DNA of 55,809 bases from Octopus bimaculoides. Taxonomy: Eukaryota. The position numbers were made by a program, and so were the translations under genes. The notes under the pieces were generated by a model. That model was not told the DNA's origin, ran no database searches, and saw only the letters and a program-made list of their open reading frames with translations. Every line of letters starts with the position of its first letter. Positions within the stretch are counted from its first letter, which is position 1. The stretch covers positions 95,668,803-95,724,611 of the forward strand of contig NC_068985.1 of assembly GCF_001194135.2 (NCBI RefSeq). Reading direction: 5' to 3'. Positions 19,999-52,158 of this stretch are shown here, piece by piece.

Positions 19999-20249
19999 TA
20001 CATTATTTACATCATTTACATTTGACGGATATTTGTCTTCATCATGTTTGTTGTTAACACAACGTTTCAGCTGATATACCCTCTAGGTGTCTTGGGGAAA
20101 TTTCAAACCTGGGTTCTCGTTCCTAAGGTATTTTTTGATGATATTATTATCATTATTATTATTATTATTATCATTATTATTCAGGTCACTGCCTTGAATC
20201 AAACTCAGAATGTTGAGGTTAGTAGCCTGCACTCTTAACCACTACGCTA
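19999..20249 (-). mobile_element. SINE family D, hammerhead core deleted
   Basis: Colinear with 46586-46878 except for ~11 nt removing GATGAAGGC and the last 31 nt. Confidence 0.9.
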
Positions 20250-20398
20250 CATCCAGCTGTAGAAACTCTGCCAAATCAGATTGGAGCCTGGTGTAGCCAC
20301 CTGGTTCACCAGTCCTCAGTCAAATCGTCCAACCCATGCTAGCATGGAAAGCGGATGTTAAACGATGATGATGATGCTGATGATGATGATGATGATGA
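20250..20398 (+). mobile_element. Family C 3' fragment abutting the D head
   Basis: catccagctgtagaaactctgcc...ggatgttaaacgatgatg. Confidence 0.9.
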
Positions 20399-26095: not shown

Positions 26096-26163
26096 AAAAA
26101 CTGTTTGTATTTAAGAGATACAACGCTGTTGTTTTATGGGAATTGAAACTTTGAAAATATAAT

Positions 26164-26534
26164 TCTTTCTACTATAAGCACAAGGCCTGGATTTTTTGTG
26201 GGGAGGGGACCAGTCAATTACATCAACCCCAGTGCATAACTGGTACTTGATTTATCGACCCCGATAGGATGAAAGGCAAAGCCGACCCCGTCAACATTTG
26301 ATCTCAGAACGTGAAGACATGAAATACTGCTAAGTATTTCACCCATCATGCTAATGTTTCTACCAGATCACTGCCTGAAGCATTGAAAATATAATCTTTT
26401 TTTTTTTCTACTCTAGGCACAAGGTCCAAAATTTTGGGGGAGGGGGGCAGTTGATTAGATCAACCCCAGTATGCAACTGGTACTTAATTTATCAAACTAG
26501 AAAGGATGAAAGGCAAAGTCAAACTTTGTGGAAA
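26164..26534 (-). mobile_element. Two tandem SINE B copies (26164-26380; 26396-26534)
   Basis: Separated and flanked by three copies of ttgaaaatataat. Confidence 0.88.
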
Positions 26535-26563
26535 CATTGAAAATATAATACCATCATGCTGAT

Positions 26564-26854
26564 TATTTACATTATTTACATTTGACAGATATTTGTCCTC
26601 ATCCTATTTGTTGTTGACACAACGTTTCAGCTAATATACCCTCCGGCCTTCATCAGGTGTCTTGGGGAAATTTTGAACCTGGGTTCTCATTCCTAAGGTA
26701 TTTTTCAATATTATTATTATTATCATTATTATTATTATTATTATTCAGGTCACTGCTTGGAATCGAACTCAGAAGATGAGGATAAATATCCGTCAAATGT
26801 AAATTATGTAAATAATGTACATAATTCCGCATCTCTTAAATATAGAACTGACAG
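26564..26854. mobile_element. SINE D inverted composite (minus 26564-26774 plus plus-strand 3' end 26773-26850)
   Basis: 13-bp TSD ccatcatgctgat at 26551-26563 and 26855-26867. Confidence 0.9.
26616..26661 (-). ncRNA. Minimal type I hammerhead motif in SINE D, intact core
   Basis: GACAC-CUGAUGA-A-GGCCG(GAGGGUAUAU)UAGCU-GAAA-CG-UU-GUGUC; perfect 5-bp stem I, weakened stem II. Confidence 0.75.
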
Positions 26855-27324
26855 CCATCATGCTGATGCAAAAAGATTTTAAAAACATATAACCATTCCA
26901 ATTCCTCTCAACATCACTTGCTATTTCTGCCATCTCTAAACATCTCCCCTCATACACTTATGGAACATCCTCTCTATCCCCTTGGTGCTATGTATACTAC
27001 CCCCACTGCTCCCTGTGGGCAGGTCCTCTCTCTCTCTCTCTCTCACTCTCTCTGTCTTTCTATTTCTCTCTTTAACTCTCTCCTGTTTTCCTCTCTTTCC
27101 TTGTCCTCCTGGGGCAGCCAAGTATCTTTTTGGTAGTAAAATAACTGCTTCTGTCCCTCTATCATACTCTAATCTTTCGGTTCTGCTCCCTCTCCCTGCT
27201 GAAGAAGCCTTTGCCTATTGATCTCGTAGGTGCTGGTATGAAAGGCAACTGTATTGGGGACCACATACAAAGTACCCTTGCAAGTGACACATGAAAAATA
27301 AAAAACAAAAAACAGTACACTCCA

Positions 27325-45970: not shown

Positions 45971-46375
45971 AGGGGGGGAGCACACACACACACCTCTTGG
46001 GTCCACCCTTGATGATGATGATGATGATGATGATGATATATAAAACCATAATGATATCCATTAGCATATGATGGGTTGTATGCATTTGATGTGCTTGTTT
46101 ATATGTATGTGTTGTAAGGGTTCCAGTAAGGGTTAAACTTATTTAACAAGTTCTTAGTCTATAGAGATTTTTGTTGCACACACACACATATATATACATA
46201 TATATACTTTAGTTCTGGATTAACAAGGTAACCAACCATTGGTCTTATGTGAAGAGATCTTCACAATTGTTCAAGTGTGCCACATGAAAGTGTTGGTACC
46301 TATTTCCATTTTGGATGGGAATACCATTCAAAATGGAGATGAATACAAGCATTGTCATGTGGACAGCTATTATTG

Positions 46376-46512
46376 TTTACATTTGACGGATATTTGTCCT
46401 CATCTTGTTTGTTGTTAACACGTTTCGGCTGATATACCCTCCGGCCTTCATCAGGTGTCTTGGGGAAATTTCGAACCTGGGTTCTCATTCCTAAGGTATT
46501 TTTTGATGTTGC

Positions 46513-46544
<32 letters not shown>

Positions 46545-46580
46545 TCACTACCTGGAATTGAAGTCGGAATCTTGGGGTTA
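46376..46580 (-). mobile_element. SINE D, inverted partial copy
   Basis: Reverse complement of 46586-46878 lacking the last 38 nt and part of the head; hammerhead at 46417-46459 has a 3-nt deletion at the cleavage site. Confidence 0.92.
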
Positions 46581-46585
46581 AGAGT

Positions 46586-46878
46586 GGGCATATGGTGTAG
46601 TGGTTAAGAGCGCTGGCTACTAACCCCAAGGTTCCAAGTTCAATTCCAGGCAGTGACCTGAATAATAATAATAATAACAATAATAATAATAATAATAATA
46701 ATAACACCGAAAAATACCTTAGGAATGAGAACTCAGGCTTGAAATTTCCCCAAGACACCTGATGAAGGCTGGAGGGTACATCAGCCGAAAAGTTGTATTA
46801 ACAACAAACAAGATGAGGACAAATATCCGTCAAATGTAAATAATGTACATAATTCCTCATCTCTTAAATATAGAACTG
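46586..46878 (+). mobile_element. SINE D, full length (tRNA-Ser-like head, (AAT)n, hammerhead, no simple-repeat tail)
   Basis: A box TGGTGTAGTGG 46593-603, B box GTTCAATTCC 46638-47, hammerhead 46754-99, ends tatagaactg. Confidence 0.92.
46754..46799 (+). ncRNA. Minimal type I hammerhead motif in SINE D (stem III C mutated)
   Basis: GACAC-CUGAUGA-A-GGCUG(GAGGGUACAU)CAGCC-GAAA-AG-UU-GUAUU; perfect 5-bp stem II. Confidence 0.7.
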
Positions 46879-47045
46879 ACAGTCATCATGTTATCATCAT
46901 TGGTCTGATGTCCTTGTTGCCATCACACATCTGTTTCCAAGCAAGGTAATGTTTCCTATAACCAAAACTATTTTTCATGGAAGACTGGAAAGGAACGACA
47001 TGCTCATTTATAACCAAGTGATGTCAAGACAAGGGTACACACAAA

Positions 47046-51357: not shown

Positions 51358-52158
51358 TTATTTATTCTTTTATTTGTTTCAGTCATTTGACTGCGGCCAT
51401 GCTGGAGCACCGCCTTTGGTCGAACAAATCCACCCCAGGACTTATTCTTTGTAAGCCTAGTACTTATTCTAGCGGTCTCTTTAGCCAACCAAACTAAGTT
51501 ACGGGGACGTAAACACACCAACATTGGTTGTCAAGCGATGGTGGTGGGGACAAACACAGACACGCAAACATACATACATACATACATCATCATAGTTTAA
51601 CGTCCATGCTAGCATGGGTTGGACGATTTGACTGAGGACTGGCAAGCCAGAAGGCTGCACCAGGCCCCAATCTGATCTGGTAGAGTTTCTACAGCTGGAT
51701 GCCCTTCCTAACACCAACCACTCTCAGAGTGCAGTGGGTGCTTGCCACCGGCATGAGGGCCAGTCACACGGTACAGGTAACGGCCACGCTCAAAAAGGTG
51801 TTTTTTATGTGCCACCTGCACAGGAGCCAGTCCAGCGGCACTGGCAACGACCTCACTCGAATTTTTTTCTAACGTGCCACCAGCACAAGTGCTAGAAAGC
51901 AACGCTGGTAACGATTACGCTCAAATGGTGCTATTTAGGGGCCACTAGCACGGAAGCCAGACAGCTGCTCTGGCAATGAACACGCTCGACAGTGCTGTTA
52001 GTGCTCCACTGGCGCGATGTCAGTCATCGGGTATGGTTCAAATACGATTTCACTTGCCCCAACAGGTCTTCGCAAGCAGAGTTTTAGTGTCTTCAGTCAA
52101 ATTGTTCACTCCATGCTAGCATGGAAAGCGGACGTTAAACGATGATGATGATGATGAT
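51358..52158. mobile_element. SINE A 3' half (-, 51358-51562), family C (-, 51588-52090) and inverted C 3' end (+, 52093-52158)
   Basis: Align to their consensuses. Confidence 0.88.

Follow-up and report, generated by a model that had tools for sequence, protein, structure and literature searches.

The insertion scar of a short octopus repeat suggests copying in the manner of Penelope-like elements

The window, that is, the whole stretch of DNA that was analysed, comprises 55,809 nucleotides of the Octopus bimaculoides genome (NC_068985.1, positions 95,668,803 to 95,724,611 of the forward strand), and coordinates below are positions within it. Among its repeats we identified a short non-coding element of ~290 nt, here called D, which is present at three loci (20k, 26k and 46k) as five arms. 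The 26k locus (26551-26867), in which an inverted and a direct D arm are joined head to head, was investigated as a possible product of one insertion event. The window comes from a draft with gaps and contains 4578 N, none of them in 26300-27100. The features of the three loci are collected in Table 1.

The head of D bears A- and B-box-like motifs of RNA polymerase III type; the element also has an (AAT)n run and, on its 3' side, a module of ~170 nt. The A-box-like motif (TGGTGTAGTGG) lies at +8 and the B-box-like motif (AGTTCAATTCC or AGTTCGATTCC) at +52, and no tRNA was identified in D by the Rfam tRNA model or by ARAGORN, the latter run on the window and five loci. The element ends in ...atatagaac, without poly(A), A-run or simple repeat/microsatellite; in the same window, family B carries a poly(A) tail and family C a (GAT)n tail. 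Partial head-to-tail tandems (pseudo-LTRs) were absent among the window copies of D, which are dispersed as singles or pairs.

The module carries a minimal type I hammerhead-like motif, which at 26k reads GACAC-CUGAUGA-a-GGCCGG-AGGGUAUA-UUAGCU-GAAA-CG-U-U^GUGUC. This was identified with a hand-built relaxed descriptor allowing one helix II mismatch, which matched the 26k minus copy and the family consensus and gave 0 matches in 400 shuffles of the window. An architecture for the minimal hammerhead of Penelope-like elements has been published (PMC4209133), and the D motif has the same one: helix II has 6 bp and an unpaired 5' base, helix I has 5 bp, and helix III is replaced by a palindromic insert of 2 nt. 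A strict descriptor was passed by no extant copy. All window copies have a C.A mismatch in helix II, and the CUGAUGA box is deleted in the 20k copy. Rfam detected no hammerhead, either at gathering thresholds on the whole window or in E-value mode on both pair loci, and the hammerhead shape was not obtained in minimum-energy and cofold predictions. Over 11 motif copies, 78% of cells pair, compared to 16-50% when the 3' partners were slid, and covariation was not above that of shuffled controls. The only Rfam matches were weak snoRNA and miRNA look-alikes caused by the inverted repeat.

Table 1. Positions of D arms, duplications and motifs in the window.
Feature	Position	Strand	Remarks
Solo D copy (20k)	20004-20258	-	Near full-length, tail-less, ends ...gtaaataatgta
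Left copy of 13-nt target-site duplication, ccatcatgctgat (26k)	26551-26563		Must be target DNA
Inverted D arm (26k)	26564-26774	-	Family positions roughly 48-259; tail-less end ...gtaaataa(t)
Minimal type I hammerhead-like motif (26k)	26616-26661	-	Relaxed descriptor; predicted cut between 26621 and 26620
B-box-like motif AGTTCGATTCC (26k)	26759-26769	-	Truncated 5' end of the inverted arm
Direct D arm (26k)	26773-26848	+	Last ~76 nt of D including tail; ends ...atatagaac
16-nt stretch tgacagccatcatgct (26k)	26849-26864	+	Common to the 46k locus, absent from other tailed copies
Right copy of 13-nt duplication (26k)	26855-26867		
Inverted D arm, second pair (46k)	46372-46581	-	Tail-less, 5'-truncated
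Direct D arm, second pair (46k)	46586-46876	+	Full-length, with tail
A-box-like motif of direct arm (46k)	46593-46603	+	
B-box-like motif of direct arm (46k)	46637-46647	+	
Hammerhead-like motif of direct arm (46k)	46754-46799	+	
16-nt stretch tgacagtcatcatgtt (46k)	46877-46892	+	After the direct arm

At 26k, the 5' truncation of the inverted arm falls inside its B-box region, and at its 3' end 34-35 nt, counted to gaactg, are missing; the two arms overlap by 2 nt, 'aa' (26773-26774). The earlier note had described a minus arm joined through 'aa' to a plus arm, with a single 13-nt repeat around the pair; the extent of the minus arm, the start of the plus arm and the overlap were reproduced, and the repeat was found at both of the positions given in Table 1. 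The repeat is perfect, with a chance expectation of ~2e-6 when 11x11 offsets are allowed. It brackets the whole composite, and neither arm alone is so flanked. In a 13-mer repeat listing, which was dominated by satellite, the two duplication copies were the only unique 13-15-mers near the site. The arms have ~35-40 nt of D in common and differ at 4 of 42 overlapping positions. This pair is best read as one insertion, and the core observation on it holds, with two details corrected below (the arm ends and the length missing at 46k). A near-copy of the repeat, ccatcatgctaat, at 26345-57 was considered as part of the event and rejected, as it sits in the head of an unrelated family B SINE. Two copies of family B sit, like the D composite, within 14 bp of a single AT-rich site.

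The 3' terminus of D is missing from each of the three minus copies in the window. Counted by alignment to gaactg, the loss amounts to 31 nt for the 20k copy, 34-35 nt for that at 26k and ~34-36 nt for that at 46k; the 38 nt proposed for 46k did not survive realignment. The arms at 46k are each other's closest relatives (92.6%), and a 9-nt unit occurs twice in each 26k arm and once in each 46k arm, so that at both loci the arms of one pair carry common subfamily markers. We rejected a segmental duplication linking 26k and 46k, since the likeness of their flanks ends 16 nt past the element and their subfamily markers differ. Among the D loci of the window, a clean duplication was present at 26k only; no flanking duplication of at least 7 nt was found around the 46k pair, only a doubtful degenerate one.

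The 3' ends were compared further in a small sample, made up of the window D loci and 12 related loci (L numbers below) that were recovered from public assemblies and ascertained via chance open reading frames. The 3' ends of its 19 D-like arms fall at two sites only, separated by 31-38 nt. Nine arms are tail-less and end at one homologous site (20k, 26k, 46k, L003, the plus arm of L005, L012, L013 and the inverted arms of L014 and L015), while ten are tailed (26k, 46k, both arms of L001, L004, L009, L010, L011, L014 and L015) and read ...agaac or ...agac(aac). The probability that three end points placed at random lie no more than 4 nt apart is ~6e-4. Primers abutting the tail-less ends have only 1-2 nt in common with D. 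The tail had been expected on the direct copy only, and one arm alone carries it in five of six pairs; the exception is L001, with tails on both arms.

Both plus copies had also been thought to end exactly at gaactg, which they do not. Both window plus arms read TCTCTTAAATATAGAACTGACAG identically, and they run on alike for 16 nt past the usual end ...atagaac, where tgacagYcatcatgYt can be aligned in register with 14 of 16 nt the same; related copies elsewhere end in ...atagaac and continue into unrelated sequence. Four nucleotides (acag) separate gaactg from the right repeat copy at 26k, and the shared stretch takes in the first 10 nt of that copy. Because gaactg is not the end of the element, the exact length of the duplication is blurred. 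We considered acag or gacag as the true 3' end of the family and rejected it because it is absent from nine other tailed ends.

Head-to-head pairs were present at six of nine assessable loci (26k, 46k, L001, L005, L014 and L015, not 20k, L004 or L010). Inverted pairs, which the earlier note required to be commoner for D than for families A-C, are so within the window: they occur at 2/3 D loci and 1/44 loci of families A-C (Fisher p = 0.008). A sister family, represented by L014 and L015, has a module 81% identical to that of D, a score reached by 0/1000 shuffles. L014 consists of a full-length tail-less inverted copy and 2.7 direct tandem units of 129 bp, the whole flanked by a 10/11-nt duplication (CTTAAAAAYTG). 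The array of L015 is similar, with a tail-less inverted arm and tandem units, and its composite is flanked by a perfect 12-nt repeat, TTACATTTTTTT (12/12). No flanking duplication of at least 6 nt was observed at L001, L004 and L010.

These features support a likely origin of 26551-26867 as one insertion of D by target-primed reverse transcription on both strands of a staggered break, in a Penelope-like manner. Observed directly were the build of the composite, the confinement of 3' ends to two sites, the excess of pairs, the one duplication around the unit, the motif, and the reappearance of the pattern in relatives. Under this model, the 3' end of the bottom strand would prime cDNA synthesis from a downstream start site, giving the direct arm with its 31-36-nt tail, and this cDNA would stop after ~76 nt. 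The 3' end of the top strand (...ccatcatgctgat) would prime a second cDNA at an upstream start site ~34 nt further in, giving the inverted, tail-less arm. Both cDNAs would then be joined head to head at the 2-nt microhomology, and fill-in of the 13-nt stagger would leave the duplication. We infer that a Penelope-like element provided the enzyme, a reverse transcriptase with a GIY-YIG nuclease, in trans; the sequence of steps, the transcription of D by polymerase III and any ribozyme activity are likewise putative.

The footprint known from Penelope-like elements comprises an inverted arm, a direct arm, a head-to-head join and one short duplication (PMC3846280, PMC8557442, PMC11167929), and the 26k pair has this anatomy, its last ~31-36 nt being present on the direct arm and missing from the inverted one. 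Published sizes are a tail of 30-40 bp, a duplication of 8-10 bp and an inverted repeat 37 bp shorter (PMC3846280, PMC8557442), and those of D are in line with them. The attribution of the 26k pair to such a footprint stood for the arms, the tail, the junction and the single duplication, a combination that recurs in relatives, but not as an absolute rule on the tail. Counting against a Penelope-like reading are the absence of a clean duplication at 46k, L001, L004 and L010, the two tails of L001 and the 16-nt stretch, together with the negative partner searches described below, the negative Rfam, tRNA, folding and covariation results, the C.A mismatch in helix II and the smallness and ascertainment of the sample.

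Other origins of the composite were weighed. In twin priming by L1, both strands of a staggered break prime cDNA, leaving an inverted and a direct segment in one duplication; internal priming occurs at variable points that microhomology determines, and the direct arm has a terminal poly(A). A LINE reverse transcriptase could similarly have copied D starting at the 3' end, with the second nicked strand annealing internally to the same RNA and priming the inverted arm, the way L1 5' inversions arise. The product would have the same layout, with one copy of a duplication on either side of an inverted and a direct arm that meet at a microhomology, and the 26k arms overlap by just the ~35-40 nt of D that such a process allows. 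LINE-dependent SINEs fill the window, family C has one head-to-head pair, and RTE-like LINEs lie near the sister-family loci. However, twin priming starts wherever microhomology permits, whereas here the start site is fixed: nine independent arms begin at one site on 1-2 nt of microhomology, and this tail-less site is also that of solo copies. The arms at 46k, L005 and L014 overlap over almost their full length, which is impossible from a single RNA. D also has no poly(A) or microsatellite tail, its module carries a Penelope-type hammerhead-like motif and its relatives form partial tandems. We consequently regard a LINE-type origin as unlikely. Two independent insertions, with a truncated plus D arriving first and a minus D landing at its exact 5' edge, or the reverse, are made conceivable by the very high SINE density and by the clustering of the family B copies and the composite within 14 bp. 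The only repeat brackets both arms, though, the same arrangement is present at 46k, L001, L005, L014 and L015, and the arms of a pair carry common subfamily markers, and we consider this history very improbable. It is hardly credible, in turn, that an existing D was duplicated in inverted orientation at the DNA level (by fold-back repair or a replication template switch) or that the structure is a misassembly. The window is a gapped draft and inverted repeats are prone to artefacts, but the sequence around the site is free of N and a perfect duplication surrounds the unit. The differences between the arms at 4/42 overlapping positions indicate that they are old and not collapsed reads, and the same asymmetric structure is found in independent assemblies of other samples.

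The short plus arm had further been proposed to be cDNA of the RNA fragment freed by hammerhead self-cleavage. The 26k direct arm does begin 15 nt downstream of the predicted cut on the minus strand, as had been described, and the direct arms of L014 and L015 begin ~10 nt upstream of it, so that three of six direct arms start within 15 nt. The cut-site position is nevertheless included in 11 of the 12 arms of the six pairs, the exception being the 26k direct arm, and the templates of those 11 were thus uncut. Direct arms vary in where they begin: two are full length, two start 10 nt upstream of the cut, one ~70 nt upstream and one 15 nt downstream, and no arm starts at the cut itself. Helix II is mismatched in the copies of the window, one of which has no core box, and in published in vitro assays cleavage was dispensable and no RNA ends were found at the cut (PMC11167929). 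The data do not support the cleavage product as a template, and we hold this origin of the arm to be quite improbable.

The presence of a partner element was also investigated. The window held no reading frame for a reverse transcriptase or GIY-YIG nuclease and no long ORF. A profile search with the open frame of the module found no long protein containing it among 1.84 billion representatives; it returned 160 short ORFs and no reverse transcriptase. A peptide search with the sense frame gave a single match, to a chance ORF of Octopus bimaculoides, and a second module frame had no protein match. Metagenome scans with a D 23-mer and with the sister-family motif each gave 0 matches. The reverse transcriptases near L014 and L015 were RTE-like LINEs, as judged by eye from their motifs.

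Several known systems resemble D in part. As in Pen2a of Adineta vaga (PMC3846280; also PMC8557442, PMC11167929), the inverted 5' copy is joined head to head to the direct one and is ~31-37 bp shorter at its 3' end, and, as in elements of that type, there is one short duplication and a small overlap or microhomology at the junction; the repeated part of D carries a minimal hammerhead-like motif where theirs has a minimal hammerhead. Partial tandems are a further likeness, found in the sister family (L014, L015) but not in window D. Unlike the Pen2a type, D is ~290 nt long and non-coding, has a polymerase III box-like head and flanks no reverse transcriptase/GIY-YIG frame. The 13-bp duplication at 26k also differs from the 8-10 bp reported for Penelope-like elements. 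Sm-alpha and Sj-alpha of schistosomes are similarly short and non-autonomous, with a polymerase III-type promoter region and a type I hammerhead motif; they are very abundant and have been tied to Penelope-like elements via ribozyme similarity (PMC6765202, PMC4209133). By its published description, Sm-alpha has a canonical hammerhead with loop-loop contacts and is largely tandem, whereas the motif of D is minimal, without a stable helix III, and D is dispersed.

Metazoan non-LTR retrozymes, proposed to be non-autonomous derivatives of Penelope-like terminal repeats (PMC7229834; bioRxiv 10.64898/2026.07.22.740005), are likewise non-coding repeats and bear a hammerhead, and the 129-bp units of the sister family are arranged head to tail. 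Retrozymes differ in having tandem 170-400-nt units, circular RNA and no polymerase III head, while window D is not tandem. MRC1 and other non-autonomous Chlamys elements of Chlamydomonas reproduce Penelope-type repeat structures, as D does, and have only the 3' end in common with their Penelope-like partner (PMC8557442); they belong to another lineage and have neither a hammerhead nor a tRNA-like head. In the literature searched, we found no description of a tRNA-headed SINE mobilised in a Penelope-like manner.

The match between the insertion scars suggests that D borrows Penelope-like copying machinery. A wider reading, to which we give only tentative credence, is that D and its sister form a conserved, polymerase III-headed and Penelope-dependent class of SINE with the full integration signature, and that the 16-nt stretch, which overlaps the target duplication at 26k, reflects a read-through RNA 3' end pairing with the nicked target in a telomerase-like way. 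Such a class would hold the whole signature (two internal start sites, both-strand priming and partial tandems) in <300 nt. A telomerase-like alignment step is not yet described for endonuclease-positive Penelope-like elements.

Penelope-like integration is still largely unsolved. In the sole biochemical study, both strands were cut and extended, and two internal start sites explained the 'tail' (PMC11167929). D copies are abundant natural products of insertion, from which junctions, stagger, microhomology and the choice of start site could be read genome-wide, and the small size of the element suits it as a substrate for assays in vitro or in cells. If Penelope-like dependence is confirmed, part of the large 'unclassified SINE' fraction in genomes of octopuses would move from LINE to Penelope-like dependence.

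The 13-mer ccatcatgctgat was found twice in direct orientation, bracketing both arms of the head-to-head D pair, and the two arms overlap by 2 nt, 'aa' (see table). A perfect 13-mer at both boundaries has ~2e-6 expected occurrences (11 × 11 permitted offsets). The earlier note's view of the pair as one insertion with a single 13-nt direct repeat and an 'aa' joint holds. Among all exact 13-mers repeated 100–700 nt apart, only two repeats lay in unique sequence near this locus: ccatcatgctgat and a 15-nt duplication of an unrelated neighbouring poly(A)-ended SINE (26396–26535). A near-copy of the 13-mer at 26345–57 was rejected as unrelated to the D event; it sits within the head of another copy of the same SINE. 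Upstream lies a tandem double insertion (26163–26371 and 26396–26535) with one common target (26151–26163, 26383–26395, 26537–26549), and the D duplication begins 1 nt past the third target copy, so that a single AT-rich site was hit three times. The window is eukaryotic draft sequence with 4578 N, dense in short interspersed repeats and microsatellites, and no convincing coding ORF was found in it.

The D features agree with the footprint published for endonuclease-positive Penelope-like elements, in which a 5'-truncated inverted copy adjoins a direct copy, a 30–40-bp tail is present at one end only, and duplications are short (8–10 bp); one case has been described in which the inverted repeat was 37 bp shorter and shared a 15-bp overlap with the direct copy (PMC3846280; PMC8557442). 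Because of this match, 26551–26867 is read as one event. The Penelope-like protein cuts and extends both strands, and reverse transcription begins at two adjacent internal sites without homology to the target, the stretch between them being the tail (PMC11167929). At this locus, the bottom strand would be primed at the downstream site, giving the short tailed arm, and the top strand (...ccatcatgctgat-3') at the upstream site, giving the long tail-less arm. The two cDNAs would then be joined at 'aa' and the 13-nt stagger filled in, yielding the duplication. We infer the enzyme, since no partner element was found; protein searches recovered no long protein carrying either frame of the D module.

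All informative 3' ends (19/19) fall at two sites 31–38 nt apart, nine tail-less and ten tailed, that is, without or with the last stretch of D. Head-to-head pairs were present at six of the nine loci with a visible 5' neighbour, and the tail was confined to one arm in 5/6 pairs. Clean duplications around the whole composite were seen at the three best-preserved loci (13 nt, 12 nt and 10/11 nt); none that is clean was found at the 46k pair. Both arms of a pair have subfamily markers in common, and the DNA ends abutting tail-less arms have only 1–2 nt in common with D. The expectation that inverted pairs are commoner for D than for the other SINE families, A–C, was upheld in the window at 2/3 D loci vs. 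1/44 (Fisher p = 0.008), with p = 0.06 against family C alone. The family C pair keeps its (GAT)n 3' end on both arms and so has no tail asymmetry; its flanks are a microsatellite and another SINE, which makes any duplication unreadable. At 20245–20380, the solo minus D copy overlaps at its 5' end, by 5–8 nt (catccagc), the start of a 5'-truncated plus family C copy; either chance adjacency or a two-template event could account for this mixed head-to-head arrangement.

Alignment showed that all three inverted arms in the window lack the nucleotides before gaactg, as the earlier note had described; by this alignment the missing stretch is 31 nt at 20k, 34–35 nt at 26k and about 34–36 nt, rather than 38, at 46k. 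The tailed arms do not end exactly at gaactg. They are identical over TCTCTTAAATATAGAACTGACAG and remain alike through tgacagYcatcatgYt (14/16 nt in register), with 11 of the 12 nt right after gaactg agreeing (p about 2e-6). Nine other tailed ends in relatives stop at ...agaac or ...agac, followed by unrelated sequence, and alignment with the sister family places the homologous D end at agaac; the 16-nt stretch is therefore peculiar to the 26k and 46k loci. At 26k, the right duplication copy begins with the last 10 nt of this stretch, and because the left copy must be target DNA, the target already resembled the stretch. Three readings are available: the RNA may have read through from a shared source copy and annealed by its 3' end to a target that matched; (CAT)n-like targets may be preferred; or the resemblance may be chance. 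The direct repeat holds in each case; the readings differ in how many of its 13 nt derive from duplication of the target (3 to 13).

Coordinates of D features, relatives and associated elements (window coordinates unless a contig is named)
Feature	Position	Strand	Description
13-mer ccatcatgctgat	26551–26563; 26855–26867		direct orientation
26k inverted arm	26564–26774	−	D copy between the 13-mer copies
26k direct arm	from 26773	+	last ~76 nt of D, between the 13-mer copies
16-nt stretch	26849–26864; 46877–46892
Full-length D copy	46586–46876	+	reference for the next three rows
A-box-like	+8 of the D copy		TGGTGTAGTGG
B-box-like	+52 of the D copy		AGTTCAATTCC
(AAT)n run, then 3' module			module ~170 nt
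Open frame	46372–46488	−
Open frame	46743–46883	+
46k head-to-head junction	46547–46654		~33-bp hairpin with 40-nt loop
Family C pair, long arm	51585–52091	−
Family C pair, 3' fragment	52089–52157	+	69 nt
L001/L002			head-to-head pair, tails on both arms
L005 (also L006–L008)			head-to-head pair, two near full-length arms; one tail-less end, the other enters the tail before the contig end
L004, L010			solo, tailed
L003, L013			tail-less ends at ...gtaaataat
L012			tail-less end at ...gtaaataatgta
L009, L011			tailed ends
L014 inverted arm	10029 to 9716		full-length copy without last 35 nt
L014 flanks	9705–15; 10382–92		CTTAAAAACTG; CTTAAAAATTG
L015 flanks	6068–79; 6512–23		perfect 12-nt TTACATTTTTTT
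L014 RTE-like ORF	2061–2959
L015 RTE-like ORF	1–1564

Relatives were sought with the D-module peptide and a profile as queries, loci being reached through short chance ORFs. The peptide matched one Octopus bimaculoides chance ORF and the profile 160 short ORFs among 1.84 billion representatives; 11 of the latter led to 12 distinct loci on 15 contigs. The octopod set (L001–L013) consists of short-read contigs from one sequencing project. One profile match was the N-terminus of the predicted O. bimaculoides dystrobrevin beta isoform X1 (XP_052825882.1), in which residues 1 to ~33 (...GEGWRVYQPKCCVNNKQDEDKYPS...) correspond to the D hammerhead module translated in its sense frame. An alternative first exon of this predicted isoform appears to come from a D copy. 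With this O. bimaculoides match, an octopod origin of the window is very probable.

The sister family comprises two young composites on long contigs of another organism (L014, L015), its module being 81% identical to D over 135 columns, a score reached by 0/1000 shuffles. In L014, a 3-nt overlap joins the inverted arm to 2.7 direct units of 129 bp ending in ...aaatttagac. In L015, a tail-less inverted arm is joined to direct tandem units, with the helix II hairpin at the junction centre. Helix II is perfect in the L014 units (GGCCGG/UCGGCC) and partly degraded in L015 (GGCCGA/UUGGCC; GACCGG/UCGGCA). At L015 6081–6165, a near-perfect palindrome is centred on this hairpin, ccacaatgttt-(hairpin)-gaaatgttgtag, which fits the snap-back self-priming proposed for rotifer Penelope-like elements. 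The reverse transcriptase ORFs a few kb from both composites (...NYRGITLTSIAAKIY...FVDF[ST]KAFD...YADD...) resemble RTE-type LINEs and are not Penelope-like.

LINE-type twin priming yields the same geometry as the 26k pair, but its start points should vary with microhomology, and two nearly full-length arms are impossible from one RNA; we consider it unlikely. Independent nested insertions are very improbable, and a DNA-level inverted duplication or misassembly is scarcely credible, given the single flanking repeat, the recurrence in independent assemblies and the four differences in 42 nt between the arms.

The earlier note had also proposed that the short arm is cDNA of the ribozyme's 3' cleavage product. 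The 26k direct arm does start 15 nt downstream of the predicted cut, as stated there. However, every other arm includes the cut-site position, and direct-arm 5' ends are scattered around it rather than clustered (two full length, about −70, −10, −10 and +15; none at the cut). Cleavage was moreover dispensable in vitro (PMC11167929), and the proposal is not supported.

Neither ARAGORN nor Rfam recognised a tRNA in D, so the label 'tRNA-derived' rests on the box motifs. The D module carries the motif GACAC-CUGAUGA-a-GGCCGG-(8 nt)-UCAGCC-GAAA-CG-U-U^GUGUY. Helix II has 6 bp, with one base unpaired at the 5' end, and helix I has 5 bp; helix III is replaced by a palindromic insert of 2 nt (ACGU). 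Minimal hammerheads of this architecture, presumed to function as dimers, have been published for Penelope-like elements (PMC4209133). A descriptor permitting one helix II mismatch matched both the family consensus and the 26k copy, and nothing in 400 window shuffles. The helices pair in 78% of cells (11 copies) vs. 16–50% in slid controls. Because Rfam reported no hammerhead in D, minimum-energy folds favour other pairings, covariation is not above shuffles, all window copies have a C.A mismatch in helix II and the CUGAUGA box is gone from the 20k copy, the hammerhead-like motif serves here to mark the family and is not taken to prove ribozyme activity. An open frame of about 60 codons, unusual in AT-rich non-coding DNA, begins at an ATG (MRTQV...) in the 3' module and continues across the tail; it may be what is left of a coding region's 5' end. 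A weak Rfam hit of the 46k junction to the plant microRNA precursor MIR7723 (E = 0.018) was a false lead from the inverted repeat.

The closest known systems to the D composites are the Penelope-like insertion structure itself, the SINE-like, polymerase III-type, hammerhead-bearing Sm-alpha/Sj-alpha of schistosomes (PMC6765202), MRC1-type non-autonomous Chlamys elements (PMC8557442) and metazoan non-LTR retrozymes, for which descent from Penelope-like elements as non-autonomous derivatives has recently been argued (bioRxiv 10.64898/2026.07.22.740005). The concept is already in the literature; no paper in the library searched reports mobilisation of a tRNA-headed SINE by a Penelope-like route. 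D behaves as would be expected of a non-autonomous passenger of a Penelope-like element, whose enzyme we infer.
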